From positions 62,001-126,000 of the IMG/VR virus record IMGVR_UViG_3300047558_000137: a DNA stretch of 64,000 nucleotides; one strand, 5' to 3'. Below the pieces are notes generated by a model that did no database searches, was not told the DNA's origin, and saw only the letters and a program-made list of their open reading frames with translations. The position numbers and the translations under genes were made by a program. Below, one piece after another: positions 17,498 to 58,416 of the stretch; position 1 is the stretch's first letter, and every line of letters begins with the position of its first letter.

Positions 17498-18330
17498 AAG
17501 TCAACGTGTAGACGTGGACTGTAGTTGTAACCTTTGCTTAGTGCCCAGTCTGCTACCCGAACACGGTTGGCGGCATAAGGAGTAACAACACCACCTTGTG
17601 GCATTACATAGACAGGACCATGAAACCCAACAGCACGATATTGACCAACTGCACGATCTACTTCTGCAAAGTGTTCGTCTGTTTCCACAACAAACTTCAA
17701 GTAGGTAAAGCCGTAGTCTTGGTACATACGCACAATCTCTGGACGAATTGCTTCGTCCCATGCTTCGCCACTTGCACTTAGCTTGGGACTTACTGAGAAT
17801 GTAATTTCATTGCCAGCAATATCAACCCAGTCTAAGATGTAGTCAATAAACCTACCTTGCAGAGTTTGTGTACCATTTGTTTCGAATGTGATATTACGCA
17901 AGTCCTGCATACGCTCATGTTCTAATAACTCTTGATACGCACGTTGCCAACCTAGCAATGGTTCACCACCTGTAATTACAAGATGCACATCGTTGCCATT
18001 GTCCTGCACCCAACGATGATTGGGTGTAAGAGCTAGCATTTGATCTACTAGATCTTTTGTTTCTACTGTTGGGCTTAGATCTTTAAAAGCAGGATGCCAC
18101 GATGCGTAGCTGTCGCATCCAGTATTAACTAAGGGTAGACTAGTAAAGTCTTTATACAAGTGGACATTCTTTGCCACTTCGTCGGCCTCCGTTGACGTTT
18201 CGCCTGGCTTGCAGCCAAAGCCTGCACATGTAAAATTACATCCAAATGTGCGTAAGAATACTGATGGTACGCCAACAAAACGGCCTTCACCTTGAGCGCT
18301 GTAAAAGAGTTCACTGATTTTTAATTTCAT
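17473..18330 (-). CDS. queE: 7-carboxy-7-deazaguanine synthase (radical SAM)
   Basis: ISELFYSAQGEG...VFLRTFGCN, ITGGEPLL, FETNGT, SVSPKL, PRLHVDLWG. Confidence 0.92.
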   Translation of the reverse strand: MKLKISELFYSAQGEGRFVGVPSVFLRTFGCNFTCAGFGCKPGETSTEADEVAKNVHLYKDFTSLPLVNTGCDSYASWHPAFKDLSPTVETKDLVDQMLALTPNHRWVQDNGNDVHLVITGGEPLLGWQRAYQELLEHERMQDLRNITFETNGTQTLQGRFIDYILDWVDIAGNEITFSVSPKLSASGEAWDEAIRPEIVRMYQDYGFTYLKFVVETDEHFAEVDRAVGQYRAVGFHGPVYVMPQGGVVTPYAANRVRVADWALSKGYNYSPRLHVDLWGNGWGK

Positions 18331-31935: not shown

Positions 31936-32376
31936 TTAAACGCTAATTTGTTGTGGTCGGTGAGTTTCATATTTAATAAGTGCGCCGTTTTCACCATCTT
32001 CGGCCACTTCAATCCAGACACTACGTCCAGGATATTTTGATGCGATTTGCAAATACAAATCGTCTGCAATCATTTCGCACGACTTAAAGTCAAGGTGTAT
32101 GGTTCCATCTCTGTAGAGATTTTCCAGCCAACGCTTGAACTGAATAAATTCCACATCCCGGTCATTATGAAAAACATCGATCCAAACACGGAAGTGGAAT
32201 ATATGGCGATGAGGCACCCCAAGAAAAGATACATCATACTCATCACCGGTCGCCAAAGCAGGATCAGTTGCTGCGGCTGGATATTTGTGAATGCCTTCTT
32301 TACGGAATGTAACCCAGATTTTTCTATCTGCACGTTCTTTAATCCTATCTATAGTAGCACGTTGTTCTTGATTCAT
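31936..32376 (-). CDS. Second QueD/PTPS-like T-fold protein
   Basis: GIH.YP, PHRHIFHFRV, DRDVEFI..K..L, SCEMIA..L, V.EDGENG. Confidence 0.6.
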   Translation of the reverse strand: MNQEQRATIDRIKERADRKIWVTFRKEGIHKYPAAATDPALATGDEYDVSFLGVPHRHIFHFRVWIDVFHNDRDVEFIQFKRWLENLYRDGTIHLDFKSCEMIADDLYLQIASKYPGRSVWIEVAEDGENGALIKYETHRPQQISV

Positions 32377-32882
32377 AATGGTGTATCCTTAGTATATTTA
32401 GACCAGTCAGTAAAGACTTTTCTATTTCTTAATTCATGTAGACTATGACACCAGACTCCTGGATTAGTTGCAGCAAAGTCTTTGTCGTCTAGCTTAATTG
32501 TAGCATTGTAGCCTAGCATTTGTATATAGGGTAATTTTACCGAAATCATCGGAATAAAATTATTGTATTCGCAAAGAGCTCCTTCTACTAGACCTTCAGC
32601 CGATTGTACATCAATATCTAATGTACATAGATATCCTTGTTTTAGATAATGTGTAATCATATCTTCCCAGGCCTTCCATGTATCAGCATCATTAATTGCT
32701 GGATTAGGAAAGCTCATGTTAGCGCCAAAGTAAATGTGCTGACCCGGCTTCTTTAATCGAGCAGTAATATCTGCTGTTGATTGTACGCCAACAACAAACA
32801 AGGTATCCATGCCATATGCAGGGGTGTGTTCTACTTCAACACCGTAAAAGAAATTTACATCTTCATGCCCGGGTCTGTCCAT
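32373..32882 (-). CDS. Hypothetical protein in the deazaguanine cluster
   Basis: 169-aa ORF coupled to the TGT-like gene. Confidence 0.7.
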   Translation of the reverse strand: MDRPGHEDVNFFYGVEVEHTPAYGMDTLFVVGVQSTADITARLKKPGQHIYFGANMSFPNPAINDADTWKAWEDMITHYLKQGYLCTLDIDVQSAEGLVEGALCEYNNFIPMISVKLPYIQMLGYNATIKLDDKDFAATNPGVWCHSLHELRNRKVFTDWSKYTKDTPL

Positions 32883-40846: not shown

Positions 40847-41512
40847 TCATTTTTTCTTTGCGCGACCAGATTTCATGTTAGCCATCCAGTGTGCCAATTG
40901 GCCTCTTCGGCCACCTTGTTTGGCTATTTTGCGTAGACTTGATATGCTGCCTTTTGTTGGAACATTGTAACGCTTGCTGTCACCTTTATCTTCAGGATGG
41001 CGGCCATCGTGGAAGTTTTCTTTAAGATGTTCTTCGTCACGAGCCAATACAGCCTGCCCAATTCGCTCACATAACTGATTTAGTTTGGCATTATCGGTTT
41101 CGACTAGTTTGAACTTGTGTTGCCCATTATCTTGACTAGGATCCATATATCCACAGTAGACATAGTCAATCCCTAAATCTTCTAGTAGATCTGTGCAACT
41201 TTCATTGTAACGTAATTCCATACGTTGGTCACTACAAGGACTTAGCGTTGTAACTATAATGGATCCAGCGGGCAAGTCACCGTATTCTTTATTATAAGCA
41301 TCAATAGCTGTGCGTTCAGCATGGCACCAAAGTTCTGGATTGTCACTAACTAATGTGCCCAATCTTAGAACTCGTTGACCGTTAGGATCAACTACTGCGG
41401 CACCAACCCAACTGTGTTTTTCGTTGTCGTTGTCAACAATCATTTCGCAAAGGTCAACTAATACTTGATCTAAATCATTTTCTGCTGATTGAGTAAATTC
41501 GCTTAGTCTCAT
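40847..41512 (-). CDS. Zn-dependent deaminase-fold protein with capsid-targeting-like N-terminus and basic C-terminal module
   Basis: HAE...PC..C motif; MRLSEFTQSAE N-terminus; basic module after HLKE. Confidence 0.7.
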   Translation of the reverse strand: MRLSEFTQSAENDLDQVLVDLCEMIVDNDNEKHSWVGAAVVDPNGQRVLRLGTLVSDNPELWCHAERTAIDAYNKEYGDLPAGSIIVTTLSPCSDQRMELRYNESCTDLLEDLGIDYVYCGYMDPSQDNGQHKFKLVETDNAKLNQLCERIGQAVLARDEEHLKENFHDGRHPEDKGDSKRYNVPTKGSISSLRKIAKQGGRRGQLAHWMANMKSGRAKKK

Positions 41513-42144
41513 AGTATGTTCTTATAGTCTAGAAAATTGGCGTGACGATCTTGCAGTCCGCGCAAGGCAGGATTAATAAACTTAGTTACCAATGCAGTAT
41601 CGGCAAAGTTTTTAACGTTTGGTTTTACACGGGTGTTCCAGTACCATACTGCAATCTTTGCAGCCACATCGGGTCTGGCAGCTAGTTCTGGTTGTTGCTC
41701 TAATGGCAAACCTAACGCACGTCCGGCCATTTGATAATTAGCACGACCTGTAATTTGTATATAACCGCGACCATGATAACGTGCGCCATCACCGGGATGT
41801 GTGTTACCTAATATCCGAGCTTTGTCTGGAGAGTGCCGTGGATCGTATCTACGTGTGAAATACTGTGCGCCGCCAATTTCTTTCATACGACTAAAGTCGG
41901 CCGACTCGTGTTTAGTTTGTGCTAGAAATTGTGCTAACTCTACCCCACGTAGCCCATACTTCATTGCAGTCTTTTGTAATAGTATTTCTTTATCGGGATT
42001 ATTACTTAGAACATTGTATGAAGTTGGTGCCTTCATTCCCAAACCAGCTTGTGCAGCACCTGTTGCAGCCATGGCACCGGCACCTGCTAATCCACGCAGG
42101 AAACCTCTACGGTCCATTTCTGTAACAAATTCTGTTGCTCTCAT
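41509..42144 (-). CDS. GH19 lysozyme/chitinase-like hydrolase with CTS-like peptide followed by a Tat-like signal
   Basis: FLAQTKHESA, YHGRGYIQITGRANY, A.W(Y/F)W, T.(F)INP; N-terminus MRATEFVTE-MDRRGFL...AAQA. Confidence 0.85.
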   Translation of the reverse strand: MRATEFVTEMDRRGFLRGLAGAGAMAATGAAQAGLGMKAPTSYNVLSNNPDKEILLQKTAMKYGLRGVELAQFLAQTKHESADFSRMKEIGGAQYFTRRYDPRHSPDKARILGNTHPGDGARYHGRGYIQITGRANYQMAGRALGLPLEQQPELAARPDVAAKIAVWYWNTRVKPNVKNFADTALVTKFINPALRGLQDRHANFLDYKNIL

Positions 42145-42824
42145 TGCTTTAGGTGTTCGGGATTAGTTTGATTATAGTTACGCATGATAACGCCAGCTTC
42201 GGCGTTGGCTTCGTTTTCTTCTGGTGTACCTGTACCGCCTGCACCTGCTTCTAACCGGCCTTCACTATCTTGTTTGTAGTGTACAAGCTCGTGTGCAAGT
42301 GTACGCATGACATCCACAGGATGACGAGTGCCGACAACTAGCTTAATAGTTTTTTCATTTGGATTATATGTACCAAATGTAGTATCTTCAGGTTGATCTA
42401 AAAATACAATTTTAGGCAAATCCTGTAGTCCAAGCTCTTTGGCAACCCAAGGAATAAACTTCTTAACTAGTTCAACAGAAGATTGGTCTTCTGCATCCTC
42501 GCCTACATGCTTGAAGTATTGTACTTGACGTTCTCTTTTTTCTGCACCAGCATGACTAGGATATGTGCCCAAATTCTTGCCAGTGTGGCTTACTAGACGA
42601 TATCCGCCTTTTACTTTGCGAATGGTCTCGGCGATTTCTTGTAACTTTCTAACTGTTTGTGGTGTACAGACAATCTGTTTAATTTCAAAACTACTGTTAG
42701 GAAATTTAGTTTTAATGTTATTGTAGTCTAATAGAACCTCGGCCTCATCAGATGACTTGCTGATAGGCTGTCCGTCTTTATATAAGACGTACTCGGATTC
42801 GTTTAGAAAGTCTCTAGCTCTCAT
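42141..42824 (-). CDS. Modular virion-cargo-like protein with a zincin (HExxH) domain
   Basis: MRARDFLNE N-terminus; LAHELVHYKQ...ENEANA. Confidence 0.7.
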   Translation of the reverse strand: MRARDFLNESEYVLYKDGQPISKSSDEAEVLLDYNNIKTKFPNSSFEIKQIVCTPQTVRKLQEIAETIRKVKGGYRLVSHTGKNLGTYPSHAGAEKRERQVQYFKHVGEDAEDQSSVELVKKFIPWVAKELGLQDLPKIVFLDQPEDTTFGTYNPNEKTIKLVVGTRHPVDVMRTLAHELVHYKQDSEGRLEAGAGGTGTPEENEANAEAGVIMRNYNQTNPEHLKQ

Positions 42825-43255
42825 TTTAGGCTTGCACGTAGCATCCAGCTATGCTTTTCGTGTGCATCCATGCGTTCTGCTAGGAAGTTGCTGAAGCCAT
42901 GCTTACCGTGGATCTCTGCAATGTCGTAAGTCATCTTAAGAATAGTAACCATGTTGCGGCTGTCTTCTAACAATTCAGCAATCATCTGCTCAGGCGGCAA
43001 TACATCAGTCTCATCTTCGATACGACTTAACATGTTAAAACGACTGTTACTACCAGGAGCATACGCACCTAGAGCACGAATCTTTTCTGCAAAGTCGTCA
43101 ACGCTTCCGTAGACTTCTTCGTATATTGTACCAAACAAATCGTGTAGTTCTTTGAAGTTAATACCTTCTACGTTCCAGTGAAAGAACTGTGCTTTCAAAT
43201 AAAATGTAAACTCGCTAGCAAATGCTACTTTGGCTGCTTTATGTAATTCTTCCAT
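42821..43255 (-). CDS. dps: Dps-family ferritin-like protein
   Basis: FHWNVEG..F..LH.LF...YE.....DDFAEKIRALG, HEKHSWML. Confidence 0.9.
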   Translation of the reverse strand: MEELHKAAKVAFASEFTFYLKAQFFHWNVEGINFKELHDLFGTIYEEVYGSVDDFAEKIRALGAYAPGSNSRFNMLSRIEDETDVLPPEQMIAELLEDSRNMVTILKMTYDIAEIHGKHGFSNFLAERMDAHEKHSWMLRASLK

Positions 43256-45681
43256 TATTTCTTACCTTTGCGGATTGACTCTGCAATCATCATTAATTCG
43301 TTAAAATCTTCTACGCTTTCGCAATTCCATTTACGAAGTGCTAGCGCCTTACGTGTAGGCTCACCATTTGGTTTCTTCATTGGACCATCTACACCTGACA
43401 TACGGGCACAGAAACTTTTACGGCGTTTAGCATCCTTGCTACCTGGCTTTAGTTTGCTAGGTTTAGTAGTAACTGCTGTTTGCAGTTTGCTACCAGGATG
43501 TTCGCGGCGATAACTATCAACGCCCTTTTGGTTTAGGCCGCCGTTTTTGTTTTTGCCCGACTTCTTTTGCCATGCTGCACTTTCGCCATATTGTTGACGA
43601 TAGTGCTTTAACATACTCATAGCAGTTTCTTTACTCATGCCAGTTTTAATAGTCACACCATTAGCACTTAACAATTCATATACTTCGTATGTTCTACCAT
43701 CCGGGGCTGTTCTAGTTACTTTACGGATCAGAGGCTTACCTGTTGCTTCTGCCACACCTTCTCTTCCATAATGAAAGATAGATTCTAATTCATCTACTAG
43801 TTTATGGTAGTGAGTTGTGCCATCTAGTCTTTCTGGATTAGCGATAACTCCAGTTGCGTAAACCATTGCTCTAAAGAACTCTGGGCTTGCATCTACTTCG
43901 GCTTTTACTGATGGATTGGTTTTATAAACCTGAATCATCTTTCTTGCAGCACGACGGTATTTGTTATCAATACCTTGTTCTTCGCCTTCCTCCACGCCTT
44001 GCTTTAACTTTTTAATGGTCCAAGAACCATCGTTGTTCATATAGTAAAGTTCTTTTTTATGTTCACTGGCACTCCCATTCGGCGAAAGGCTACCCGACAT
44101 TTCTTCCATATATTCTGGACTATAAACATTAGGGTCGCAAATTACTACGTGATCAGCATAATAGATTTTGTTGCCTTTTATAGTTGGCTCTGATGTTAAG
44201 CCTTCCGCCACACCTTGGTCTTTATTAAATCCAAAATTACCAAACTGACGATAGAACTTTATTGCGTCATTGAAATATGCGTTAAATTCTGGTGTACCTT
44301 TTTTATACCCAATCTTTGTTAATTCTTGTTCAATATGTCGAACCAATGGCATCTCTGCTTTTAGTAGTTCTGGAGCACCTTCAGACATACCACCTGCTAA
44401 TTCTTCTTCGCTCCAGCCAATATAACTATCGCCGTCTTCGTCGCCGATACGCATAACAAACGCACCGCCTTCTTCGCTTTCAAGTTCGCCGATTTCCCAC
44501 CCAACTTTAGCTAGTGCTTGCTCTACTCGTTGTTGTGTAGCAACGTCGGGTGCAGAAAACCACATTTTGGCAAGATGGAACAGCGCATCTTCTGGACCAT
44601 CACCATTGTCATCGCCTGCTGCATATTCGTTAAGACCTTCTTGGTCAGCAACAGCTTGTAGTTCTTTTGCAATTCTAGCCAAATTCTTAGGACTCAGTTC
44701 GGCAATCATGCTGTCCAAGTCGCCCTCGTACTGATCCCAGAACTGTGCAAACAATGGCGCACTAGTATTCAAATACTCTAGTGCATCGTCGCCTTGATCA
44801 TATATTGATTGATACAATTGACGAATAGTATCACCCAGACCTTGGCTTTCTGCCATAGGTGCTGCACCGCCTGCACCTAATGTTGCACCAGCTGGTAAGT
44901 GCCATGCATCTGCAGGCTCATTACCTGTACCGTGCCAATCATCTTCATTTATGTCTGCATCAAAATAGTTTTGTGCATAGGCACGAACTTCGTCATCATT
45001 GTAGAATGGTCCTGCAACTTGATATCCGCGACTGTAGTCTTTCTGGATATGTTTCATAATATCGTTTGGAGTTAAGTAACTCATAAAGTTACCTCCCCAA
45101 TTGTAAGGTGGGTTACCGGATACAGTAGTTTCTTTCCAACGGCCACCATCCTGTGTCAATGCACCAATGAATACTCCTTCGTCTTCACTGGCAACTATAA
45201 CGTAGAAACCATCTACATATTCATCAGACTCTTCATCTTGATCATAGTCATTTTGGCTAACATCGCTAGAGTGGAAACTTACAAGACCGTGGTTATATAA
45301 ATTAACAACAACAAAACGCTTGTCTTGTCCAAAGTCTGTAATAACACCAGTCGCACCTTTATACTGTACATCGCCAGTAACAATGACGTCGTCGCCGATG
45401 TTTAGCTCTTCAGCATTTTCCGCCATGGCTTTCTGGTAAGCAATTTCGGTGTTATTGGCCATTTGTTGCTTGAAGTTGTCAACTGCACCGCCTGGGTCAA
45501 TTGATCCTGGAGTGGTAGGTATTGGAGCACCTTCTTTGACTTTTTTAACTTTAACGCAACTATCTGTACCATTCTTAGTACCGTTATAACGATACCCGTC
45601 CCAGCAAGCCTTGCCGTCTGCACCTTTAATTTTCTTGGATTCTTTTATCGGCTTTGGCCCAATGATGTCATCTAGAAACAT
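43255..45681 (-). CDS. Polyprotein-like multidomain protein (808 aa)
   Basis: Modules separated by Phi-X-E motifs (IKE, VKE, MAE, INE, LNE, MSE, VAE); basic C-terminal module ending ...RKWNC. Confidence 0.7.
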   Translation of the reverse strand: MFLDDIIGPKPIKESKKIKGADGKACWDGYRYNGTKNGTDSCVKVKKVKEGAPIPTTPGSIDPGGAVDNFKQQMANNTEIAYQKAMAENAEELNIGDDVIVTGDVQYKGATGVITDFGQDKRFVVVNLYNHGLVSFHSSDVSQNDYDQDEESDEYVDGFYVIVASEDEGVFIGALTQDGGRWKETTVSGNPPYNWGGNFMSYLTPNDIMKHIQKDYSRGYQVAGPFYNDDEVRAYAQNYFDADINEDDWHGTGNEPADAWHLPAGATLGAGGAAPMAESQGLGDTIRQLYQSIYDQGDDALEYLNTSAPLFAQFWDQYEGDLDSMIAELSPKNLARIAKELQAVADQEGLNEYAAGDDNGDGPEDALFHLAKMWFSAPDVATQQRVEQALAKVGWEIGELESEEGGAFVMRIGDEDGDSYIGWSEEELAGGMSEGAPELLKAEMPLVRHIEQELTKIGYKKGTPEFNAYFNDAIKFYRQFGNFGFNKDQGVAEGLTSEPTIKGNKIYYADHVVICDPNVYSPEYMEEMSGSLSPNGSASEHKKELYYMNNDGSWTIKKLKQGVEEGEEQGIDNKYRRAARKMIQVYKTNPSVKAEVDASPEFFRAMVYATGVIANPERLDGTTHYHKLVDELESIFHYGREGVAEATGKPLIRKVTRTAPDGRTYEVYELLSANGVTIKTGMSKETAMSMLKHYRQQYGESAAWQKKSGKNKNGGLNQKGVDSYRREHPGSKLQTAVTTKPSKLKPGSKDAKRRKSFCARMSGVDGPMKKPNGEPTRKALALRKWNCESVEDFNELMMIAESIRKGKK

Positions 45682-45682
45682 T

Positions 45683-47617
45683 TTATTTCATTCCTTGCTG
45701 TTTAGATACCTGTTGCAATATGCTAGCAACTTGTCCACCTTTTTGTGGATCTGCTAGTGCATCACCAACTAGATCAGCTAGGGCCTTTGTTTGTTTTACA
45801 TCAGTTGATGCCATTGGCTTGCTTGGATCTGTTGCAATACCTTGTATTGCGTGTGATGCTTGTGCAACGTTAATACTCTTATCGGCACCTGCAATCTTAT
45901 TTAAGTTTGCTTTTTGAGCTTGTGCAGCTTGTGGGTCCGGTTGTTGTGGTTGTCCTGGTTGTTGTGCGGCAGGATTAGCAGTACCGCCTGTAGTCATGCC
46001 GTACTCTTTAATCTTACGTGGGGTTTTGCCTTCTGGGTGCTTGCGAATAATAACGCCAGCTTGTCCCATTTTCTGCAATGGTAATACATCATAGCTGCCA
46101 CCTAGAACTTGTTCTACATAACCAATTAGTTCTTTAGTAGTAAAGCCCTTTTGATATGTGCCTGCACTGGTAATAACACTCATTGGCTCTGGACCTGGCT
46201 TACCATTCTTAAGAGCACTTAATACATCTTTGCCACGAGTAGTAATCAACGCAACACCACCTGGTGCTAAAATACGACCAATGTTCTGTACGATCTCTTG
46301 ACGTAGTTTAGGTGGAACAACGTTCAATACGTTAAAGTTAGTTACACGATGGTAAGCATTATCTGGAATAGCTGTAAAGTCTGTGTATGTTGGCTTTACA
46401 TCTTTCTTTGGATATGGCTCATAGCTATCAGCACCCAATTCAGCAGCACCTAGGCCTAGGCCTGATCCAATATCAATGGTTTTGCCTGTTGGACTATGTG
46501 TGTCTAAGTGTGCGCGAGCTTTTTTGTATGTTGGTAGTGTACCGGGAATCTGTGTACGCTGTGCATTTTCTGGTGGAGGTAATTCTTCATCATCCTCATC
46601 AATGCTCTTACTTTGTTCTTGATACAAGGCGTGTAACTCAGCTGGTTCGATTTCGAAACTAACGCTTGCTTGTAATAGTGCTTCTTTATATGATGCACCT
46701 GCATTGTGAATAAGATCCTGCATCAATGCTACAGCTTCTCTAGAATCTAATGCTTCTGGACTAGTAATATTGCCCATCATGACGTCAAACTTTTCATCGC
46801 CAGTGGATTCTTTAACTAATTCGTGACCACCTTCCATGATAGCAAGTTCTTTATCAGTAAATTGCTTGCTAGATTCTCTAACTGGTGGCATCCATTTCTT
46901 AGCCTTGGCGCCTAGCTTTTGTTCTAAGTTGGCAACAGTTTTGTCTACTAGTTCCTGACTAGCACCTGCCTGTGGCTTATAGAACCATGCACCATTACGC
47001 GATTGGCGTAGACCTAACTGTTGTAGTTGTTGATCTGTAAAACTACCAGCAATGTTTCTTAAATTAAAGAAATACATGCTCTTATCAGCTTCTGCTGTGC
47101 CCTGTGGAATATAAGCATCGCCCACAGGATTAACAGTACCATTTGGCCATTTAACGCCAATGGTCATATTAGGATACTTAGACTTAATAGCACCAGCATG
47201 ACGGAACGCATCGTTGCTATTAGTATGTTGTTTCATATCAATCCACTGTGCGCCCTGTTTTTTAACAACACGGAAGTCGCCTTGTGGATCTTCTTCGCCG
47301 GTGACATCTGGACCACGACGACTAAATGGTTTAGCATGGAAGTTATGATCGTAACCTTCATCAAACTTTGCAAACTCTTGCTTTAGTCTGCGCTCAACGC
47401 TGCCTTCAACTACTTGCTTATCTAAGTCACGAAGAATACTTTCGGCTGCACCTACTAACCGTCCAGCAAATGGGTGTTCGCCCGACTTTTTTGCTTTGGC
47501 TTTTTCGGTACCACGTACTTGGTCGCCAGCCTTCTGGCCTTTCTTTTCTCCTGCAAAAGAGAATTTGGTACCCTCATGGATACCATCCAAAATGGATAGT
47601 GATTTTTTAATGTCCAT
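45683..47617 (-). CDS. Polyprotein-like multidomain protein containing a class I methyltransferase domain (644 aa)
   Basis: IDIGSGLG...NVLNVV...ILAPGG; Phi-X-E linkers (IHE, VVE, VRE, IME, VKE, IDE, IKE). Confidence 0.7.
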   Translation of the reverse strand: MDIKKSLSILDGIHEGTKFSFAGEKKGQKAGDQVRGTEKAKAKKSGEHPFAGRLVGAAESILRDLDKQVVEGSVERRLKQEFAKFDEGYDHNFHAKPFSRRGPDVTGEEDPQGDFRVVKKQGAQWIDMKQHTNSNDAFRHAGAIKSKYPNMTIGVKWPNGTVNPVGDAYIPQGTAEADKSMYFFNLRNIAGSFTDQQLQQLGLRQSRNGAWFYKPQAGASQELVDKTVANLEQKLGAKAKKWMPPVRESSKQFTDKELAIMEGGHELVKESTGDEKFDVMMGNITSPEALDSREAVALMQDLIHNAGASYKEALLQASVSFEIEPAELHALYQEQSKSIDEDDEELPPPENAQRTQIPGTLPTYKKARAHLDTHSPTGKTIDIGSGLGLGAAELGADSYEPYPKKDVKPTYTDFTAIPDNAYHRVTNFNVLNVVPPKLRQEIVQNIGRILAPGGVALITTRGKDVLSALKNGKPGPEPMSVITSAGTYQKGFTTKELIGYVEQVLGGSYDVLPLQKMGQAGVIIRKHPEGKTPRKIKEYGMTTGGTANPAAQQPGQPQQPDPQAAQAQKANLNKIAGADKSINVAQASHAIQGIATDPSKPMASTDVKQTKALADLVGDALADPQKGGQVASILQQVSKQQGMK

Positions 47618-48216
47618 TAGTAGGCACCTTTAACTTTAACTAACTTAGGCTTGGTAGCAATATTTGTATATCCACCTAGCTTCTTATTAACCTGCTTGCG
47701 GGTCATGCCCTCTTCGCCTAATTCTTTAACTACTGCACTAACAGAACTAGAGCAACTTGCACCACCTGTAGCATCTTCTCTAATTTTTAAATTCTTAGTA
47801 AGATCAGCTGCATCGCCACCAAAGAATCCCTTAAATGCATCTCTGTACTGTTGTTGTCTTTGTTGCTTTTCTTGTTGTCTTTTAGTTGGCTGTGCTGCTG
47901 GCTTCTTTTGCTTAGGCTCTGAACCTAACATTTCAGACATCTGCGCTTCTGCGTCTGCTGGATTAAATCCTGGGATTTCTTCTTGCTTGCCCATTTCGTG
48001 CTGACTAATCATATAGTCCATAACACTAACAATCATGCCTTTAACTTGGGCAATCTTTTCTTGGCACCACTCTGGCAAGTTTTCGTTATCGCCGATGGCA
48101 CGTTCTAGGTGTGTGGATACGCGAATAATAGTATGCAGGTTGTTTTTAAACATGCCCGCTTCGTCATCATATTCAGCATCTTCTGTGTAAGAGTTAATAA
48201 AATCTGTAGTTTTCAT
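47617..48216 (-). CDS. Hypothetical protein with CTS-like N-terminus
   Basis: MKTTDFINSYTE; first gene after the late box at 48238-48243. Confidence 0.7.
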   Translation of the reverse strand: MKTTDFINSYTEDAEYDDEAGMFKNNLHTIIRVSTHLERAIGDNENLPEWCQEKIAQVKGMIVSVMDYMISQHEMGKQEEIPGFNPADAEAQMSEMLGSEPKQKKPAAQPTKRQQEKQQRQQQYRDAFKGFFGGDAADLTKNLKIREDATGGASCSSSVSAVVKELGEEGMTRKQVNKKLGGYTNIATKPKLVKVKGAY

Positions 48217-48237: not shown

Positions 48238-48243
48238 TATTTA
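48238..48243 (-). promoter_or_regulatory. T4-like late promoter box TAAATA for the cargo operon
   Basis: GCTAAATAT 21 nt upstream of the ATG at 48216. Confidence 0.55.
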
Positions 48244-48246
48244 GCA

Positions 48247-48543
48247 CTATACGTAAAAGGTGAATTCTTGAAATTCCTGTGAACTACTGTCGGGCAATAA
48301 TCTACCATCAACTGTTACGTTTTTAAATGATATATTATTGTTAGGGGCACAATTATAAATTTTTACTTGATGAGCGCCGTGTTCTACTTCTACTTCTATG
48401 TGCTCTTTAATGTATGTTTCGTAGCTAGGCCATGCCCAGGTACGTTCGGTTAGCAAATCATCGTCTACGTAGACACGATATACAGGACTGCAATCCCAAT
48501 CTTTGTGGCAATACACATCAATTGTGAGAGCAGCGTGTGCCAT
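48247..48543 (-). CDS. Hypothetical beta-rich protein
   Basis: 98 aa; resembles 49328..49774 (W...P.Y.(V/I).V.....). Confidence 0.6.
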   Translation of the reverse strand: MAHAALTIDVYCHKDWDCSPVYRVYVDDDLLTERTWAWPSYETYIKEHIEVEVEHGAHQVKIYNCAPNNNISFKNVTVDGRLLPDSSSQEFQEFTFYV

Positions 48544-49289
48544 TATTTTAACCCCGCGGCCTGTATTGTTTTGGGCAGTTTAGGATATCTAGTAGATACC
48601 ACTTCTTCCTGTTCTGCCATGGGGATTTTGTCCATAATGCGCCCTAGTTCAGCGTCATTGCGTCCAAACATCTGCATTAAGAATGTTGATCTTAATTCAG
48701 GATTGTTTCTAATCTGATTCCAAGTGTTGCGTACATCTGTGCCGTGACTTACATCAACTGCATCTTCTTCAAGATTAACTTCAGCCTCTTGCTCGGGAAC
48801 AATAATAACATACCCATGTTGATCTGCTGTTACTGCATTATCAGGGCCTTCCCAGGTTTGATAGTAAGTAGGGTCGCCTACACTTTTGCCAGCTGGCAAT
48901 GTGTTTCTTTGTCCGTTTTTCTTAAACTCTTGATATGTACCATCTACATTTAACCGTGCAGCATCGGGCGCACCTACTGCGGTAATAAACACAGTGCGGT
49001 TCTTTTGTGCCTCAAATTGTTTGGGGAATGTGTATAGGCTGCTAGCCTGTATGATACGGTCTTGTGCCACGCCCTGCGCTGTCATGAATTTAACTCTATC
49101 ACTAAAGTTAAATGGACTGTCGTCTTTAACGATACCCGATGTAACTACGTAAACATTATCACGGCCAAATCGGCCCTGTAACTTCTCGTAAACTGCACGG
49201 TGATTAAGACCAAAGGGCTGAAAACGCCCTGGGTATGTTACAACCAAGTTAACCGGGTCTAGGGATTCAAGTAATTCGTTTATAAACAT
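48543..49289 (-). CDS. HIGH-type nucleotidyltransferase-like protein
   Basis: VVTYPGRFQPFGLNH, SPFNFSDR, GTDVR; late box at 49310-49315. Confidence 0.6.
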   Translation of the reverse strand: MFINELLESLDPVNLVVTYPGRFQPFGLNHRAVYEKLQGRFGRDNVYVVTSGIVKDDSPFNFSDRVKFMTAQGVAQDRIIQASSLYTFPKQFEAQKNRTVFITAVGAPDAARLNVDGTYQEFKKNGQRNTLPAGKSVGDPTYYQTWEGPDNAVTADQHGYVIIVPEQEAEVNLEEDAVDVSHGTDVRNTWNQIRNNPELRSTFLMQMFGRNDAELGRIMDKIPMAEQEEVVSTRYPKLPKTIQAAGLK

Positions 49290-49327
49290 AGTAGCATATT
49301 ATACTACTATATTTAGTTTATTTTGGT

Positions 49328-50856: not shown

Positions 50857-51579
50857 TTATTTATGTGGCATTACAACCAGCTCATGACAATTTGATATCA
50901 AATCCGGGGACATTAAACGAACCATAGTATTAATACCTTCGTCGTTGCTGTAAAAATAGCAATTCCAAATATAAGAACTACCTTTTGACAGCATATCTAA
51001 TGTGCCTTTTGGAACATGGACTAGATCTGGCCCTAAATTAGAAAGATACAGATAAAGACTCTCTTTTACATGGGCAGAGAATGTGCCATCTTTAATGATA
51101 ACTTTATAACGATACCCGAGATCATTCTTTCGAATAATAGCGCCAGAGTTTAATATAGCTTCTGCTTCGTCATCTTCGGGCCCATATACAGACTCAACAT
51201 GGGTTTTATATGTGGGTATATATGTTTCAACAATATTACGCATATCATCGTCGGTTTGTGCATATACCTGTATGCGCGGTTCTTCGACTCGCATCTTTAT
51301 TCCGGGGATATTGGCCTGTTTGAGATTGCGTAGTTGTTCCAATAAAACAACATCGGCAGAATTTACATTAGACTGTCGAATATGGCGATACCACCAAGAT
51401 CCGCCAGGGTTGTAATTCTTACGGAATTCTATTTCTTGGGCGATATCGCCATTGCTTAAAATCAATCTACCAGCAGGAGCATACAATACCATTTTATATA
51501 GGTACTTGCCATAGTATTTTTTGGCTGTATGTCCTACTGTTATTTTAGGATTGGACTGAATCCAATACGATATATCCAT
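50857..51579 (-). CDS. Hypothetical protein
   Basis: 240-aa ORF overlapping the clpA stop. Confidence 0.7.
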   Translation of the reverse strand: MDISYWIQSNPKITVGHTAKKYYGKYLYKMVLYAPAGRLILSNGDIAQEIEFRKNYNPGGSWWYRHIRQSNVNSADVVLLEQLRNLKQANIPGIKMRVEEPRIQVYAQTDDDMRNIVETYIPTYKTHVESVYGPEDDEAEAILNSGAIIRKNDLGYRYKVIIKDGTFSAHVKESLYLYLSNLGPDLVHVPKGTLDMLSKGSSYIWNCYFYSNDEGINTMVRLMSPDLISNCHELVVMPHK

Positions 51580-53833
51580 TATTATCTACCATAGGAGTGC
51601 TCGGAGCATACGATCCCTGCGGAGTAAAGATGAATCCATCGTTAATGTAATCAACTTCAATCAATGTATATGCAGGAATGTTCTCGAACAATATCTTCTT
51701 ACTTAGCGGGACCTTAATAAGATCGCTAATTTTACGTGCAAGGGGTCGTGCGCCAAGTTTAGGATCATATCCTACCTTGCTCAATTGATCCACAGCCGCT
51801 TCAGTTAACCGAATCTTAACAGATTTCTCTGACAACAGTTCGTTAACTTCGTTAATAAATTTGCTAACAATCTTCTTGATGCTAATTTCATCAAGTTTGT
51901 TAAATTTACAGATGCCATCTAAACGGTTACGGAATTCAGGTTTAAAGAATTCTTTAACTGCTCGGTCATCTTCTCCAGTTTTTTGCAAATCACGGCCAAA
52001 GCCAATGTTATTGCGTTCATTATCTGCCGCACCTAAGTTACTTGTTAGAATAACAATAGCATTACGGGCATCGGCCTTTTTACCATTGGAACTAGTAATA
52101 GTGCCTTCATCCATAAGTGCCAGCATAATATTCATAATATCTGGATGTGCTTTTTCAACTTCATCAAGAAGAATAATACAGTTAGGATTCTTCTCAATAT
52201 CGCTAATAAGCAGGCCGCCGCCTAAGTTACCATCATCGAAGCCAACGTAACCGGGGGGAGCACCAATCAGTTTCGCAACTGAGTGCTTCTCTTGGTATTC
52301 ACTCATATCGTAGCGTAGTAGTTTCATCCCGAGATTCTCGGCTAGCAACTTTGCTAACTCAGTTTTACCTGTACCAGTGGGGCCCAGAAACAAGAAGTTA
52401 CCAATAGGTTTGTTCATTGCTTTTAGACCGGCACGAGCCACGTAAATCTTTTCCAGCACAGTACCAACAACTTGGTCCTGGCCATATAGTTTGTTCTTAA
52501 TATTTGATTCAAGATCAACAAGAGAGTTGGTATTATCACTGCCAATTTGGTCAACTGGAATCTTAGTAAACTTACTAATAATATCCACAATGTGACTCTT
52601 ACGGCAAGTCCAGCTAATAGCATTGATCTTTAGCTTTGCACAGGCTGTATCAACAAGATCAATAGCTTTGTCAGGCAACTTCTTGTCTGTTTGATAGCGT
52701 ACACTTAGATCAACTGCGGCATCTAATGCCTCATCGCTAATACTACCGCCATGAAATTCTTCAAAGTAACCACGTAGTCCACGCAAAATCTCTTTTGCTA
52801 CCTGTGGAGTAGGCTCTTCTACAGTCATACGATAGAAACGGCGCATCAACGCACGATCCTTTTCAAACGATTGGCTGTATTCTTCCCAAGTGGTTGATGC
52901 TACTACCTTAATATTGCCTTTAGTTAGTGCAGGCTTAATCATGTTAGCAAAGTCAACACTGCTATTGCTACCAGTGCCGGCGCCACGCATCTGATGTGCT
53001 TCATCAATAAACAAGATGCACTTGCCTTTGCTGTTTAACGCACCAATAACATCTTTAAACTTCTCTTCAAACTCGCCGCGGTACTTAGATCCAGCAAGCA
53101 AACTGCCAATGTCTAGGTTATAGACTGTATAGTCTTGTAGGTAATTAGGTACTGCACCATTAACAATGTTACGTGCCAGTCCTTCTGCAATAGCAGTCTT
53201 ACCAACTCCGGGGTCGCCTACTAACAATACGTTAGATTTGTTACGCTTAGCCAATACTTGTGCAATCTCATCAAGTTCGAACTCGCGACCAACAACTGGA
53301 TCAATTTGATTGTCCTTGGCTTTGGCGTTAAGGTTGTCGCAATATTCTTTAAGAATCTCTTCTGCGCGGGCACTGTTTGCATTGCCGCGGCGCTGTTTGC
53401 TCTCTACATAGTTCTTATTGTAGTAATCAACAAACTGTGTGCGTTCTAGACCGTACTTGATAAAAAAGTAACTGGCGTGACTATTTGTTTCGCTTGTGAT
53501 GCTTAGAAAAATGTCAATAACTTGTAAGTGACTGCGACCACTAAACAATACTTGTGTAAATGCACGGTTAAACACACGCTCTAGGCTGTGAGTTTTCTTA
53601 GCAACATGATCTGGATCTCGACTAACAATAGCAGTTTGTGCATCTAGGTAGTCTTCAATGTCTTTGATCATGGCATCTGCATCTGCCCCATATGCTACAG
53701 TTAGATCATAAAACGGCTTATAGGTCATAAGACCGTGTGTTAGATGCTCTAACGTCACGTATTCGTGATTGTATTTCTTTGCCAGATCAACTGCACTGGC
53801 AATAATAGTTTCAATTTCGGGGTTTTGATTCAT
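51545..53833 (-). CDS. clpA: ClpA-like two-AAA-domain unfoldase
   Basis: HEYVTLEHL N-domain, GDPGVGKT, FIDEAH, GPTGTGKT, LLDEVEKAH, IGF ClpP-docking loop, GARPL. Confidence 0.92.
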   Translation of the reverse strand: MNQNPEIETIIASAVDLAKKYNHEYVTLEHLTHGLMTYKPFYDLTVAYGADADAMIKDIEDYLDAQTAIVSRDPDHVAKKTHSLERVFNRAFTQVLFSGRSHLQVIDIFLSITSETNSHASYFFIKYGLERTQFVDYYNKNYVESKQRRGNANSARAEEILKEYCDNLNAKAKDNQIDPVVGREFELDEIAQVLAKRNKSNVLLVGDPGVGKTAIAEGLARNIVNGAVPNYLQDYTVYNLDIGSLLAGSKYRGEFEEKFKDVIGALNSKGKCILFIDEAHQMRGAGTGSNSSVDFANMIKPALTKGNIKVVASTTWEEYSQSFEKDRALMRRFYRMTVEEPTPQVAKEILRGLRGYFEEFHGGSISDEALDAAVDLSVRYQTDKKLPDKAIDLVDTACAKLKINAISWTCRKSHIVDIISKFTKIPVDQIGSDNTNSLVDLESNIKNKLYGQDQVVGTVLEKIYVARAGLKAMNKPIGNFLFLGPTGTGKTELAKLLAENLGMKLLRYDMSEYQEKHSVAKLIGAPPGYVGFDDGNLGGGLLISDIEKNPNCIILLDEVEKAHPDIMNIMLALMDEGTITSSNGKKADARNAIVILTSNLGAADNERNNIGFGRDLQKTGEDDRAVKEFFKPEFRNRLDGICKFNKLDEISIKKIVSKFINEVNELLSEKSVKIRLTEAAVDQLSKVGYDPKLGARPLARKISDLIKVPLSKKILFENIPAYTLIEVDYINDGFIFTPQGSYAPSTPMVDNNGYIVLDSVQS

Positions 53834-53842
53834 ATCAGATAT

Positions 53843-54685
53843 TTATTTTGGATTGATTAGTGAACGAACAGTTTCTAGTTGCTCGCTGTTAAGATCTTTT
53901 GGGACAAACAGATTTAGCTCTGCATACAAATTACCTCTAGTGTTGCTGTTAAGTTGATACAATCCTTGTCCGGGAATCCTGAATTTAATTCCAGGTTGTG
54001 TGCCGGGTGGTATTGTAATCTCAAATATTTTATCATCGATTGTGGTGATAGTTGTTGTGCCGCCAGCAATCGCTAATAAACAGTTCACGCTAATTTTACT
54101 ATATAAATCGATATCTTGCACGACAAAATTGTCCAATGGGGCAACCGAAATGTGTACATACAAGTCTCCACGTGGAATAGTGCTAAACAAATTGTCGCCC
54201 AAATTTGGATATTTTATCTGAGTGCCGTGATGTACGCCACGTGGTATCCGTACCTCAACAGTTTCTCGTTGTCCATTTGTTGTCTGTACACTGATTGTTG
54301 TATTTTGTTCACTTAATGTAGATGCCAATGATACCGGTATATTAACACGAAGGTCTTTGTTTCTTCGCATTTGTCTTTGAAAAGGACTTTGGCCTCCAAA
54401 GTTAAATCCAAAATTTTGGAATATTTGATCTAGGTCTGGGTGCGACCCAGGTCCATTCCATTGGAAATTAAATCCACTAGGCATGCCGCCACCGCGACGT
54501 TCTAAATCATACTGCTGTCGTCGATTTGGATCACTTAACGTGTCGTAGGCAGTTTGAATAGCTTGGAATCGAGCCGTGTCTCCGCCCTTGTCAGGATGAT
54601 GCTGACTTGCAAGTTTTCGGTATGCCTTTTTAATTTCATCTGGTGTAGCTGTTTCGCTTACACCCAATGTTTCGTAGTGAGTCAT
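53843..54685 (-). CDS. J-domain co-chaperone (class II, CbpA/DnaJ-like, no Zn finger)
   Basis: YETLGV, HHPDKGG (HPD), G/F-rich linker, GDLYV C-terminal domain. Confidence 0.9.
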
Positions 54686-55914: not shown

Positions 55915-56448
55915 TTATAGTAATGGTTGTTCAGCACCTGGTACAATTTTCTTACCACTTGCTGTTGTTGCGATTGGTGCACCAAATCCACCAAATGTTT
56001 GTGTTACGGTAGTCTGCACTGGTGCGCCAAATCCACTTGCTGGTTGTGCTGCTGGTGCACCAAATCCACCTGCTGCCGGTGCTGGTGTAGCACTAGACAA
56101 TTGTGGGCTAGGTAGACCTGCTGCATCTGGTACAGCGGATTGTCCTGCCAATTTCTCTTGTGTACGACCATAAGCTGACACACCTAATACAGCACACATA
56201 CTCACGTGGAATAGTCCACCGCCTTGTAGCGTAATAGGTACCCATTGACGGAACGCATCATTGGCTGCTTCCTGTTCCCAGAATTGGACTACAGTAAACA
56301 TGATTGGAAATACTGCAAAGTCACATAGACAGCAGGTCATGTACATAAATGCTGCACATGGGCGCCAGTATTTCTGCATCCACTCGCCTTTTGAATTAAT
56401 TTCTGTGACAACTGGTGCTGTTTCTTTTTCTTTTTTCTTTTTAAACAT
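55915..56448 (-). CDS. Putative holin (3TM-holin-like) with low-complexity tail
   Basis: WRP..AF.YM..C..DF..FP, W.PITLQGGGLFH..M.AVLGVSAYGRTQEK; lysis-cassette context. Confidence 0.6.
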   Translation of the reverse strand: MFKKKKEKETAPVVTEINSKGEWMQKYWRPCAAFMYMTCCLCDFAVFPIMFTVVQFWEQEAANDAFRQWVPITLQGGGLFHVSMCAVLGVSAYGRTQEKLAGQSAVPDAAGLPSPQLSSATPAPAAGGFGAPAAQPASGFGAPVQTTVTQTFGGFGAPIATTASGKKIVPGAEQPLL

Positions 56449-56471
56449 CTCTAGCTCCTTGAATTTTTATA

Positions 56472-57026
56472 TTAGAGTGGCATCCATAACCAGATACCCT
56501 GGCTTAGTAAGATAATGCCTATAACAGCAACAACTTCACTAATCTTATACATCTTGTTATTAACTGACAAGATACTTGCTGACAGCAACACAATAGCCAA
56601 TTGGAATGCCATGCTAGCAAATGTTAACCATGGACCATGTTTGGCTGCTTCGTCACGTGCTTTTTCAAATGCCTGTGCTTTTGCTAACAATTCTCGTTTA
56701 CCTTCGCCCTTTTCGGGTTCAGATTCGTAACGATCGATTTTCTTTTGTAGTGCTTCTGCTTTTACTTTATCACCGCGAGCAATGTAGTCATCACGTTGGC
56801 CTTCGGCAATAGTTTGTTTAATTGACTTTGACTGATAGAAAGCGTATGTATCAGTAGCCTTCAACATATTCTTTAAGCCAGCACCTGAGTGCATGTTTGC
56901 AAAGTAAGTAGTAATGGCCATGAACAAGGCCATGATAACAATAACTAGACCTGCTTTGTCTTTGATTTGTGCTTCACGTTCGCTGCGTGATAATGGTTTA
57001 ACTTCGGCTTTAACTTCTTCTGCCAT
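56472..57026 (-). CDS. DUF4337-like membrane protein
   Basis: N-terminal TM, YAFYQSKSIKQ, two C-terminal TMs with QLAIVL.S.SIL. Confidence 0.6.
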   Translation of the reverse strand: MAEEVKAEVKPLSRSEREAQIKDKAGLVIVIMALFMAITTYFANMHSGAGLKNMLKATDTYAFYQSKSIKQTIAEGQRDDYIARGDKVKAEALQKKIDRYESEPEKGEGKRELLAKAQAFEKARDEAAKHGPWLTFASMAFQLAIVLLSASILSVNNKMYKISEVVAVIGIILLSQGIWLWMPL

Positions 57027-57281
57027 TTATTTTACTCCTTCGAATATTCTTTTTTGTATTTCGTACCATTCATTCCATTTATCAATTTTAACTGCACATT
57101 CATAGTATGTAGCATAGTTAATATTAACAGTGGAACTAACGTCACTTAACTTTGCACCTTCGGCTAGTTTTTGTAACTGTGGGCAAGTCTGTGCGTTTTT
57201 AGGTGCTTCAGGAAACTTTGCTGTTACTGGAACAACAGTTGAACATCCAGATAACAATAATGCCGCTAATAGATATCTCAT
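57027..57281 (-). CDS. Outer-membrane spanin (Rz1-like lipoprotein)
   Basis: LSGC lipobox, Pro-rich, Cys; follows the i-spanin. Confidence 0.7.
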   Translation of the reverse strand: MRYLLAALLLSGCSTVVPVTAKFPEAPKNAQTCPQLQKLAEGAKLSDVSSTVNINYATYYECAVKIDKWNEWYEIQKRIFEGVK

Positions 57282-57742
57282 TTTGGTTGCTCCGCCGACA
57301 TGTTATGTGCATCAATGAATGCTTTAGGGATAACACATTGATTGTTGTATTTTGCAACTTCGCGATCGATATATTGCTTAACAATAACTTCGCGGCCCTT
57401 TATTACTTTGACCTTCTCTGCTGACTTCTTATCTAATGCTAGATTAGCAGCCTTAGATTCCTCTTCGGCCTTGGCAACTTTGGCTTCCATTTCTGCAACA
57501 CGCTCACGCCATTGCATCTCTGTAGCATACCCACCTTCGAAGTATATACCGGCAGCTAAAAGAGCTGCACTAGCAACCTGTGCTAGTGTTACATATTTCG
57601 ATAATGGCGGGAACCAACGTAGTAGTCGATTGACAACAAAGAAGAATAGTACACAACCAACAATCCCGGCCAATAGGATAGTGTGTACAATAAATTGTAT
57701 AAAACTATCTGGTAGGAAATGTAGCAACCACATGTTATGCAC
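57278..57742 (-). CDS. Inner-membrane spanin (Rz-like)
   Basis: N-terminal TM helices, coiled coil, C-terminal C.IP motif; follows the endolysin. Confidence 0.7.
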   Translation of the reverse strand: MHNMWLLHFLPDSFIQFIVHTILLAGIVGCVLFFFVVNRLLRWFPPLSKYVTLAQVASAALLAAGIYFEGGYATEMQWRERVAEMEAKVAKAEEESKAANLALDKKSAEKVKVIKGREVIVKQYIDREVAKYNNQCVIPKAFIDAHNMSAEQPK

Positions 57743-58364
57743 CTAGTACGTGGCAGGCGTGGTTGTAGTGTTTAATACGATCTTCTAATCCAATGGTACC
57801 GCCGTTAATGCGCTTAGTTAGATTTAGAATGTCGCCTTTGTCTGCGTATTGGTTTAAGTTGTTAGCTTCCCAGAACCAAGCGGCACTTTGTACACAACCT
57901 TCAAAAGTTGTTAAGTGTTCGCTAGCTTCTTCTACACTAATTTCTAAACTTTGTGCGTAACGACTGTAGTTGTCCTTACCAGTTAACTGGATAAGTCCAC
58001 GTCCGCAATACTTATATCCATCGCCTGACTCTTCTGGACCGTTGCCCATACGGTTAGCATAGATTCTATTAGCAATAGCCTCTTGCTTGTTAAGCTTTGC
58101 ACAGTATTCTTCTGCTAGTGCATCCGTTGGGAAATACTTACCGAACAACTTACGTAGTGTTGGCGGGCGATAGTTTAAATTCTCTTTAATGGCTTTAAAA
58201 CCACCAGATTCGTGGGCACACTGTGCTAAAAATGCTGCTACACGCTGTGGTGTATCAATATCATAATCTGGTAATATTTCACACAGGGCTTCATGCCAGT
58301 GATCAATATATGGGTTTCCGGGAACGATTTGTTTTAATTGGTCTAATGATAGTTCGAAACTCAT
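57735..58364 (-). CDS. GH19 endolysin
   Basis: FLAQCAHESGGF..ENLNY, YCGRGLIQLTGKDNY, SAAWFW, TKRINGG.IGL.DR; late box at 58388-58393 and AGGAG SD. Confidence 0.9.
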   Translation of the reverse strand: MSFELSLDQLKQIVPGNPYIDHWHEALCEILPDYDIDTPQRVAAFLAQCAHESGGFKAIKENLNYRPPTLRKLFGKYFPTDALAEEYCAKLNKQEAIANRIYANRMGNGPEESGDGYKYCGRGLIQLTGKDNYSRYAQSLEISVEEASEHLTTFEGCVQSAAWFWEANNLNQYADKGDILNLTKRINGGTIGLEDRIKHYNHACHVLGA

Positions 58365-58416
58365 TGAAAAACTCCTAGTGACTAAGATATTTAGCCAAAA
58401 AGGAGTTTAAAATGGG

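Follow-up and report, generated by a model that had tools for sequence, protein, structure and literature searches.

A GH19 muramidase gene with a capsid-type leader and a predicted twin-arginine signal in series in a freshwater jumbo phage

A gene for a GH19 hydrolase lies on the minus strand (open reading frame, ORF, 41509-42144) of a 64,000-nucleotide stretch of DNA, positions 62,001 to 126,000 of the IMG/VR virus record IMGVR_UViG_3300047558_000137, the whole of which is called here the window. The locus raises the question of why a wall-degrading phage enzyme should carry, one directly behind the other, a leader of the kind that brings proteins into a capsid and a signal of the kind that takes them across a membrane. 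The original prediction, made from the letters alone, had described the protein as capsid-targeting peptide, twin-arginine translocation (Tat) signal and GH19 domain, and this three-part reading holds in our analysis; the coordinates, the strand, the length of 211 residues and the N-terminal sequence, which reads MRATEFVTEMDRRGFLRGLAGAGAMAATGAAQAGLG, were all confirmed. We regard the leader/Tat signal/GH19 architecture, as far as sequence analysis goes, as highly probable. The mechanism that may stand behind it is more tentative, and we propose, with a rough probability of 0.45, that the product is a pre-pro-enzyme which would be packaged, trimmed by the prohead protease, ejected with the DNA and exported by the Tat system of the next host. 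The features of the gene are as follows.

41509-42144, minus strand: whole ORF, 211 amino acids plus stop, comprising leader, Tat-type signal, linker and GH19 domain
42118-42144, minus strand: leader, residues 1-9 (MRATEFVTE), of the T4 capsid-targeting/propeptide type, ending at the predicted protease site V-T-E
42046-42117, minus strand: predicted twin-arginine signal peptide, residues 10-33 (MDRRGFLRGLAGAGAMAATGAAQA), with the arginine pair (RR) at 42106-42111
42013-42045, minus strand: linker, residues 34-44, variable and of low model confidence
41512-42012, minus strand: GH19 catalytic domain, residues 45-211, delimited by Pfam, alignment, AlphaFold2 and structure match
41905-41907 and 41878-41880, minus strand: codons of the catalytic residues E80 and E89

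The body of the protein matches Pfam Glyco_hydro_19 (PF00182, E 4e-14) and PHROG 181 'endolysin' (E 8e-39). An AlphaFold2 model built with 46 homologues (mean identity ~61%) has a predicted local distance difference test score (pLDDT) above 90 over residues 41-211; in residues 1-40 the block means are 36-52, and the score drops below 50 at residues 1-13 and 20-36. Foldseek relates the model with probability 1.0 to 7r6s, 4ok7, 9ms7 and 9eoi; the best PDB matches (7r6s, 4ok7 and 9ms7) are phage GH19 endolysins. H79-E80 and E89 are invariant in the 46 homologues, and E80/E89, a pair of the form HE[ST]...E with a spacing of nine residues, match in the alignment the catalytic HES...E pair of the SPN1S endolysin. 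Judging from model and alignment, the GH19 fold and the catalytic glutamates are intact, and muralytic activity is predicted.

The leader is not peculiar to this gene. At least five unrelated genes of the window are headed by it, and two more carry variant leaders; the bodies behind the leaders (DUF6934-like, deaminase, GH19, HExxH metallopeptidase-like) are mutually unrelated.

4333-4797, minus strand: leader MRATDFITE ahead of a DUF6934-like domain
40847-41512, minus strand: coupled gene downstream of the GH19 gene, leader-like MRLSEFTQS ahead of a cytidine/dCMP deaminase domain
42141-42824, minus strand: coupled gene upstream of the GH19 gene, leader MRARDFLNE ahead of an HExxH metallopeptidase-like domain (weak DUF6647/DUF6782 matches)
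47617-48216, minus strand: first gene of the string to which these genes belong, leader-like MKTTDFINS
43255-45681, minus strand: member of the string, variant leader MFLDDIIG, 808-aa protein with C-terminal DUF6321
48543-49289, minus strand: variant leader MFINELLES

Related contigs bear up to seven consecutive leader genes (L016), mostly translationally coupled, and 35 distinct leader ORFs were collected from the GH19 loci against none among 917 ORFs of unrelated head-module control loci. Their logo is M-R-A-x-E-F-[ILV]-x-E, with F6, [ILV]7 and E9 as the conserved positions and no conservation past position 9; the synonymous variation of the codons shows selection on the leader peptide and not on the DNA. 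The internal proteins IPII and IPIII of T4 begin with MKTYQEFIAE, whose F7, I8 and E10 correspond to F6, [ILV]7 and E9 of the leader. The first ten residues of the T4 capsid-targeting sequence (CTS) suffice for packaging, residues 4 and 7 serving for targeting and 8 and 10 for processing and cleavage, and CTS fusions are packaged and then delivered into the infected cell (PMC9026906). The leader fits the CTS at the residues which T4 requires for targeting and cleavage.

Directly behind the leader, residues 10-33 present the arginine pair, a Gly/Ala h-region and an AQA c-region. Compared with the Tat consensus [ST]-R-R-x-F-L-K, the protein reads D-R-R-G-F-L-R and its homologues [ST]-R-R-G-F-L-[GK]. 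Two curated models accept the segment, each by a small margin: Pfam TAT_signal (PF10518) with 23.6 bits against a cut-off of 22.7 (residues 9-29) and NCBIfam TIGR01409 with 17.6 bits against 16.7, and the cut-offs of both are also exceeded by internal copies of the signal in homologues. A regular expression for the Tat motif has its sole match in the window in this ORF, and 2 matches among 4132 six-frame ORFs of unrelated phage loci. The n-region of 11 residues is acceptable for a Tat signal, such a length being ordinary in this class. All 46 homologues have the arginine pair, and the conservation of G-F-L reaches at least 90%, the linker behind them being hypervariable, and the pair is present in 112 of 112 modules of the RR type. 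In these modules the median number of uncharged residues is 19 and the mean Kyte-Doolittle value 1.2, and most of them end in small-x-small (AQA, VQA, ANA) followed by K, where the protein studied here ends in AQA|G. Conservation of RRxFL in homologues, which the original prediction had named as a check, is strict for the pair within these 46, but it is not universal in the family: among the 120 nearest homologues 96 carry the RR module and 22 a non-RR module.

Most informative for the order of events are the long members of the family. The family is large: 863 of 1798 scored candidates match in one search and 437 cluster representatives in another (E <1e-30), and the architecture therefore belongs to a large group of jumbo phages from freshwater and other environments and is not a single oddity. 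Twenty-six distinct long homologues (251-1183 aa) carry the RRGFLG module internally, with its start anywhere from residue 43 to residue 570, behind mutually unrelated domains (DUF6934, amidoligase, DUF6886, nucleotidyltransferase); P0132, P0140, P0142 and P0175, for instance, combine amidoligase, nucleotidyltransferase, DUF6934 or DUF6886 with GH19. In all of these the Tat module would be N-terminal only after a predicted cut. At a constant distance before the signal module, 176 of 189 distinct contexts have a motif [LIVM]xE (4.6% in the background); the count is 97 of 102 for internal modules of all types and 24 of 26 for internal RR modules. Examples of internal contexts are KVLE|DLTRR, DLEE|DMTRR, LNE|DMTRR and VDE|DLSRR, beside FLKE|DMSRR in a short form and VTE|MDRR in the protein of the window. 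In the T4 gp21 family the proteases cleave behind glutamate, with the logo [LI]xE in T4. That these enzymes all cleave C-terminal to glutamate is stated in PMC5694885, and a T4 cleavage site is cited as 'LIE-9' (PMC9026906). The comparison supports [LIVM]xE as a predicted cut site of the T4-protease type, and to this extent the idea that cleavage in the head exposes the signal receives comparative support.

The same junction is met where separate genes of the window occur joined. Genes 4333-4797 and 41509-42144 form one in-frame gene in several other phages, the DUF6934-like domain of the former being fused to the RR-GH19 unit, with the junction ...NPRAYELGE|DMSRRGFLG at the predicted cut; the stand-alone window gene ends ...NPRAYELNDKTL. 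In the fused proteins the wall-acting domain alone is preceded by the RR module, the upstream domains being cytoplasmic-type enzymes. Multi-domain relatives repeatedly show a second motif between their domains, QGVAE with G or E behind it (13 observed, 1.7 expected, always with Q at -1), which is probably the preferred prohead-protease site. The 808-aa protein 43255-45681 has three sites of the looser form [QE]GV[AE]E, at residues 490, 562 and 642, and would on this reading be a polyprotein.

Some observations can be added on these junctions. The two genes stand 37 kb apart in the window and are fused in L015:3264-4385, P0107, P0032, P0063 and P0059, where the junction RAYELGE|DMSRR resembles an N-terminal leader, as if merged genes of an array had kept the leader as a linker. 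RR modules are also seen ahead of domains other than GH19, as LEE|VDRRGFLKG and LEE|IDRRGFLRG (L010:2498-4501, plus strand; P0140 residues 441-459); residues 462-695 of P0140 have no match in Pfam and a weak SLT/lysozyme-like lead in Atlas (0.81). A search with residues 1-42 alone matched only GH19 proteins, and is therefore uninformative on other cargo with leader and Tat signal.

Architecture, conservation and modularity of the unit are thus observed, and the route which we propose on their basis would run as follows. MRATEFVTE, like the T4 capsid-targeting sequence, would bring the protein into the assembling prohead, where a protease of the gp21 type would cleave after Glu9 (V-T-E), so that the packaged protein would start with MDRRGFL..., that is, with a twin-arginine signal peptide. 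Like the T4 internal proteins and CTS fusions, it would leave the head with the DNA and arrive in the cytoplasm of the next host, whose Tat translocase would move it to the periplasm; after cleavage by signal peptidase at AQA|G, the GH19 muramidase would be free to act on the wall early in infection, possibly for local wall loosening, priming of lysis or exclusion of competitors. We see this as the simplest model because the cut in the prohead would make the module N-terminal and because TatBC reads a Tat consensus from the cytoplasm. That a modular 'pro-signal peptide' system of this kind is widespread in jumbo phages with a T4-like core, prohead cleavage creating the export signal and the host translocase exporting the hydrolase, is a still more tentative suggestion, somewhat less probable than the mechanism for the single protein.

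Several points weigh against this route. The original prediction assumed that the nine-residue leader masks the Tat signal, and this part did not stand: TIGR01409 gives 17.6 bits with the leader and 17.7 without it, and as the score is the same the leader has no detectable masking effect on the signal. The short form as synthesised would already show a normal-looking Tat signal, so that its export in the producing cell is possible, which the proposed route does not account for. T4 and Rak2-like head proteins had no match by local tblastn in the window and the fetched flanks, and the protease scans of viral contigs and the protein search returned hundreds of other contigs, the 374-kb contig from which the window comes not being among the matches. 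Homologues of gp21 do occur in Phosso and Rak2-like phages, and leader ORFs are found together with a PF03420 protease on the same environmental contigs. The motif [LIVM]xE could also simply be carried along within a module that is exchanged as a whole, and the 176 contexts are not independent events, since the modules are homologous. Finally, non-RR modules replace the RR module repeatedly, from which it follows that Tat is not essential to the function of the family. The original interpretation as a whole is therefore partly supported.

The non-RR module is the ground on which the strongest of the alternatives stands. It reads [LIV]xE|GW[KR][DE]W followed by about 20 uncharged Gly/Ala-rich residues, in the same place as the RR module, and prevails among the 50%-identity representatives with a recognisable module (~71 against 16). 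On a FastTree phylogeny of the GH19 domain the two switch about 21 times, the tree being poorly resolved and the estimate biased upwards. RR and non-RR modules appear to be interchangeable, which fits two export routes and equally a Tat-free insertion into the membrane. Non-RR modules have long linkers with a net positive charge, a property that sits awkwardly with export by Sec. In the alternative that follows from this, which we judge unlikely though the best placed of the rivals, the protein would be packaged and processed in the same manner and would act as an entry enzyme without Tat: its exposed Gly/Ala N-terminus would insert in the inner membrane or the ejection conduit, and GH19 would cut locally, opening the peptidoglycan for tail tube and DNA, with the arginine pair a dispensable or lineage-specific addition. 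Such an enzyme would be comparable to T7 gp16, T5 Pb2 or the role proposed for SPN3US gp47, the last being a precedent (PMC5694885), and for the lysozyme domains in polyvalent proteins packaged in the head a breach of the wall at entry has been proposed (PMC5512222); a protein of phage Motura with transmembrane segments and GH19 points in the same direction, a virion role for it being an impression, as its neighbours are annotated hypothetical. Against such an enzyme stands the RR module itself, which fits the full consensus and passes two curated models. The pair is kept by 112 of 112 modules in spite of deep divergence, which is hard to explain unless it is read by TatBC, which faces the cytoplasm, and the conserved A-x-A end suggests cleavage by signal peptidase in an N-in orientation.

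The next alternative, to which we assign a slightly lower likelihood still, places the export in the producing cell: the protein would be an auxiliary endolysin of the signal-arrest-release (SAR) kind, exported late by Tat, alone or in competition with packaging, and the leader would be its n-region. The equal Tat score with and without the leader is in line with it, as are the position of the gene in a string with a late-promoter-like element such as also precedes the endolysin and the Gly/Ala-rich h-region, which recalls SAR domains. It has to be weighed against the lysis cassette elsewhere in the window (55915-58364, minus strand, 15 kb from ORF 41509-42144).

57735-58364, minus strand: second GH19, a canonical signal-less endolysin, with CTAAATAT 24 nt upstream of its ATG
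57278-57742, minus strand: membrane protein
57027-57281, minus strand: Rz1-like lipoprotein, weak LysC match
56472-57026, minus strand: DUF4337 protein
55915-56448, minus strand: holin-like protein with three transmembrane segments, weak match

The separate GH19 endolysin that had been noticed at 57735 is a real gene (PHROG 181, E 6.5e-75), 30% identical to the protein of ORF 41509-42144, and we consider it the ordinary lysis enzyme because it is signal-less and adjoins Rz1-like and holin-like genes, both of them weak matches. The cassette is complete, and a soluble muramidase freed at AQA would lyse the producing cell early. Moreover, the long homologues conserve the signal perfectly although folded domains precede it and it stands 43-570 residues from the N-terminus, and the leader is common to signal-less enzymes of cytoplasmic type (deaminase, metallopeptidase-like, DUF6934-like).

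Two further alternatives have little to recommend them. That the leader is a translation-coupling or recombination motif rather than a capsid-targeting one, and the protein a plain Tat-secreted GH19, could be argued from the ATGA with which 29 of the 35 leader genes begin, overlapping the upstream stop, but it is very improbable given conservation at the protein level with synonymous codons and an end exactly after E9, the match to the functional residues of the T4 CTS, and leader-like sequence also internally at domain junctions. A second, exported isoform from the in-frame ATG at residue 10, with the full-length product packaged, had been offered by the original prediction; we rejected such an internal start as hardly credible, because Met10 is not conserved (M, L or I in homologues, as in EDLSRR, EDISRR and EIDRR), and no Shine-Dalgarno-like ribosome-binding sequence lies upstream of codon 10.

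Each element of the proposed route is known; what is new is the conserved serial order of capsid leader, protease site, export signal and muramidase, of which the searchable literature, covered in part, gave no description. Closest for the first half of the gene are IPI, IPII, IPIII and Alt of T4, which likewise have a short leader with a conserved F, [ILV] and a terminal E (10 residues in T4, 9 here), shared by unrelated cargo genes in variable arrays. In T4 the leader is removed by the gp21-type protease, as is predicted here, and the cargo is delivered with the DNA. In contrast to T4, the cargo here is a peptidoglycan hydrolase whose export signal follows the cut site immediately, and cleavage motifs are also found within multi-domain precursors. 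To our knowledge no T4 internal protein has an export signal in this position, and a literature search agreed.

SPN3US gp47 is a precedent for half of the proposed mechanism: it is an ejection protein from which the prohead protease removes a propeptide at x-x-E, and the mature form has at its N-terminus a hydrophobic transmembrane helix, for which contact with the host membrane has been proposed (PMC5694885). Its propeptide has about 111 residues and an AxE motif, in place of the nine-residue leader here; no Tat consensus, signal-peptidase site or muralytic domain is reported for it, and no homology is claimed. A muralytic domain carried in the virion is also known from virion-associated hydrolases and polyvalent proteins (T7 gp16, T5 Pb2, Iyer et al. 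2017), and the polyvalent proteins have effector-like domain fusions such as those of the long homologues (amidoligase, nucleotidyltransferase) (PMC5512222). Unlike the route proposed here, all of these are thought to act from the outside in during penetration. In polyvalent proteins, moreover, processing is attributed to a built-in metallopeptidase and not to prohead-protease sites, and 'signal peptide' and 'transmembrane' are not among the words of the paper that described them (PMC5512222). They are defined by two or more disparate effector domains within a single head-packaged polypeptide, whereas the protein of the window is single-domain.

Endolysins of the SAR and signal-peptide types have a Gly/Ala-rich, weakly hydrophobic N-terminal export segment and use host machinery. 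In SAR endolysins the segment stays uncleaved as an anchor, and the gene belongs to the lysis cassette. They are, however, Sec-dependent lysis enzymes of the producing cell, and here we find a Tat consensus, an AxA site, a capsid-type leader and a gene 15 kb away from a lysis cassette with its own GH19. In logic only, the arrangement recalls the bipartite presequences of thylakoid-lumen proteins, whose first signal is cut off in the first compartment, so that a second one, of the twin-arginine type, is exposed for the membrane that follows; neither the organisms nor the machinery are related, and the first compartment here would be a virus capsid.

The genomic surroundings allow for expression of the GH19 gene together with the head. 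Genes 48216 to 40847 form an uninterrupted, overlapping string, in which the ATG of ORF 41509-42144 shares bases with the preceding stop codon (ATGA); at the other end of this ORF, its stop codon shares bases with the start of the following gene. The first gene of the string has CTAAATATA at 48238-48244, 22 nt upstream of its ATG, and the element CTAAATA(T) precedes four starts by 19-24 nt (47617-48216, 48543-49289, 31936-32376 and the endolysin; copies at 48238-48244, 49310-49316, 32395-32401 and 58388-58394, minus strand). Although it is not enriched in the window overall (16 copies, 15.7 expected), of the 13 minus-strand copies of CTAAATA, 8 have a start codon no more than 70 nt downstream (binomial p ~2e-6). 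The T4 late promoter TATAAATA has no copy in the window (6.9 expected), and a scan of the gene string for sigma-70 promoters and terminators gave none above chance. CTAAATA is the late-promoter form of T4-like cyanophages, which makes CTAAATA(T) a candidate for the late promoter here; as it is late-promoter-like, late co-expression of the string with the head genes is plausible.

The same coupled string contains a leader-free Dps/ferritin-like protein (42821-43255, minus strand), and the deaminase, metallopeptidase-like and Dps/ferritin-like neighbours are possible co-packaged effectors. The C-terminus of the deaminase (ENFHDG...SISSLRK) resembles the tail of an unrelated protein, P0257. Leaders of a related appearance are seen elsewhere: in an abundant phage group with contigs of up to ~200 kb, an ORF with MRINE[IL]xxE and then a Gly/Ala-rich stretch keeps a fixed place beside a module of baseplate hub, portal, PF03420 protease and capsid; its distance upstream of the protease gene is about 7 kb (loci L040, L043, L053, L062, L071, L072, L074, L088, L089 and L096 among others), and none was found in 80 loci of the Phosso-like protease group.

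GH19 matches in cultured phages start only from residue ~37-70 of the protein, hence none of them has the N-terminus with leader and signal. The best of these matches is a 498-aa protein of Achromobacter phage Motura (L105:2233-3729), annotated 'chitinase', with hydrophobic Gly/Ala/Leu-rich segments ahead of its GH19 domain; its neighbours are all annotated hypothetical, and two downstream look baseplate-like by their sequence. The combination of a hydrophobic segment with GH19 may thus also exist in cultured jumbo phages. One scan of bacterial genomes gave as the sole relative a partial GH19 region in a 476-aa lipoprotein of Variovorax sp. Sphag1AA (L104:4614-6044). It adjoins a gene that on inspection of its sequence resembles a type IV secretion coupling protein, and may be a conjugation-associated wall hydrolase; as it has neither the leader nor the arginine pair, a cellular origin of the leader-signal-GH19 unit is untraceable from it.

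The 374-kb contig comes from a freshwater metagenome, and the phage is uncultured, with freshwater metagenomes as its sole known source; none of 50,697 cultured phage records is a close DNA relative of the window. The nearest cultured DNA polymerases are those of Sinorhizobium phage Phosso (52%), Agrobacterium phage Atu_ph07 (47%) and Rak2-like phages (~43%), which are jumbo myoviruses with a T4-like core, and under our best explanation the source phage is a freshwater jumbo myovirus with such a core. Synteny with Phosso extends over a part of the window, including DnaJ and Clp-family ATPase genes and the region adjoining the polymerase. At 919-2305 (plus strand), 17473-18330 and 51545-54685 (both minus strand) the window has genes like those of dihydrofolate reductase and thymidylate synthase (judged from N-terminal sequence and Phosso synteny), a QueE-like radical-SAM (S-adenosylmethionine) protein (weak Pfam match) and the DnaJ and Clp-family ATPase genes just named.

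If the proposed route is true, proteins injected by phages would not be limited to the cytoplasm of the new host, and an enzyme delivered by the capsid could be re-addressed to the periplasm by host export within moments of infection. It would be the first phage-injected protein to use Tat, would parallel in a virus the bipartite presequence of thylakoid proteins, and would explain a second muramidase in a phage with a complete lysis cassette. The predicted cleavage motifs, [LIVM]xE and QGVAE, would apply to the prohead proteases of an uncultured clade, and the cassette of leader, cut site and signal, being short and portable, is a possible tool for the delivery of proteins to the periplasm by phages. 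For the biology of these phages, it would open a class of early, wall-directed functions.

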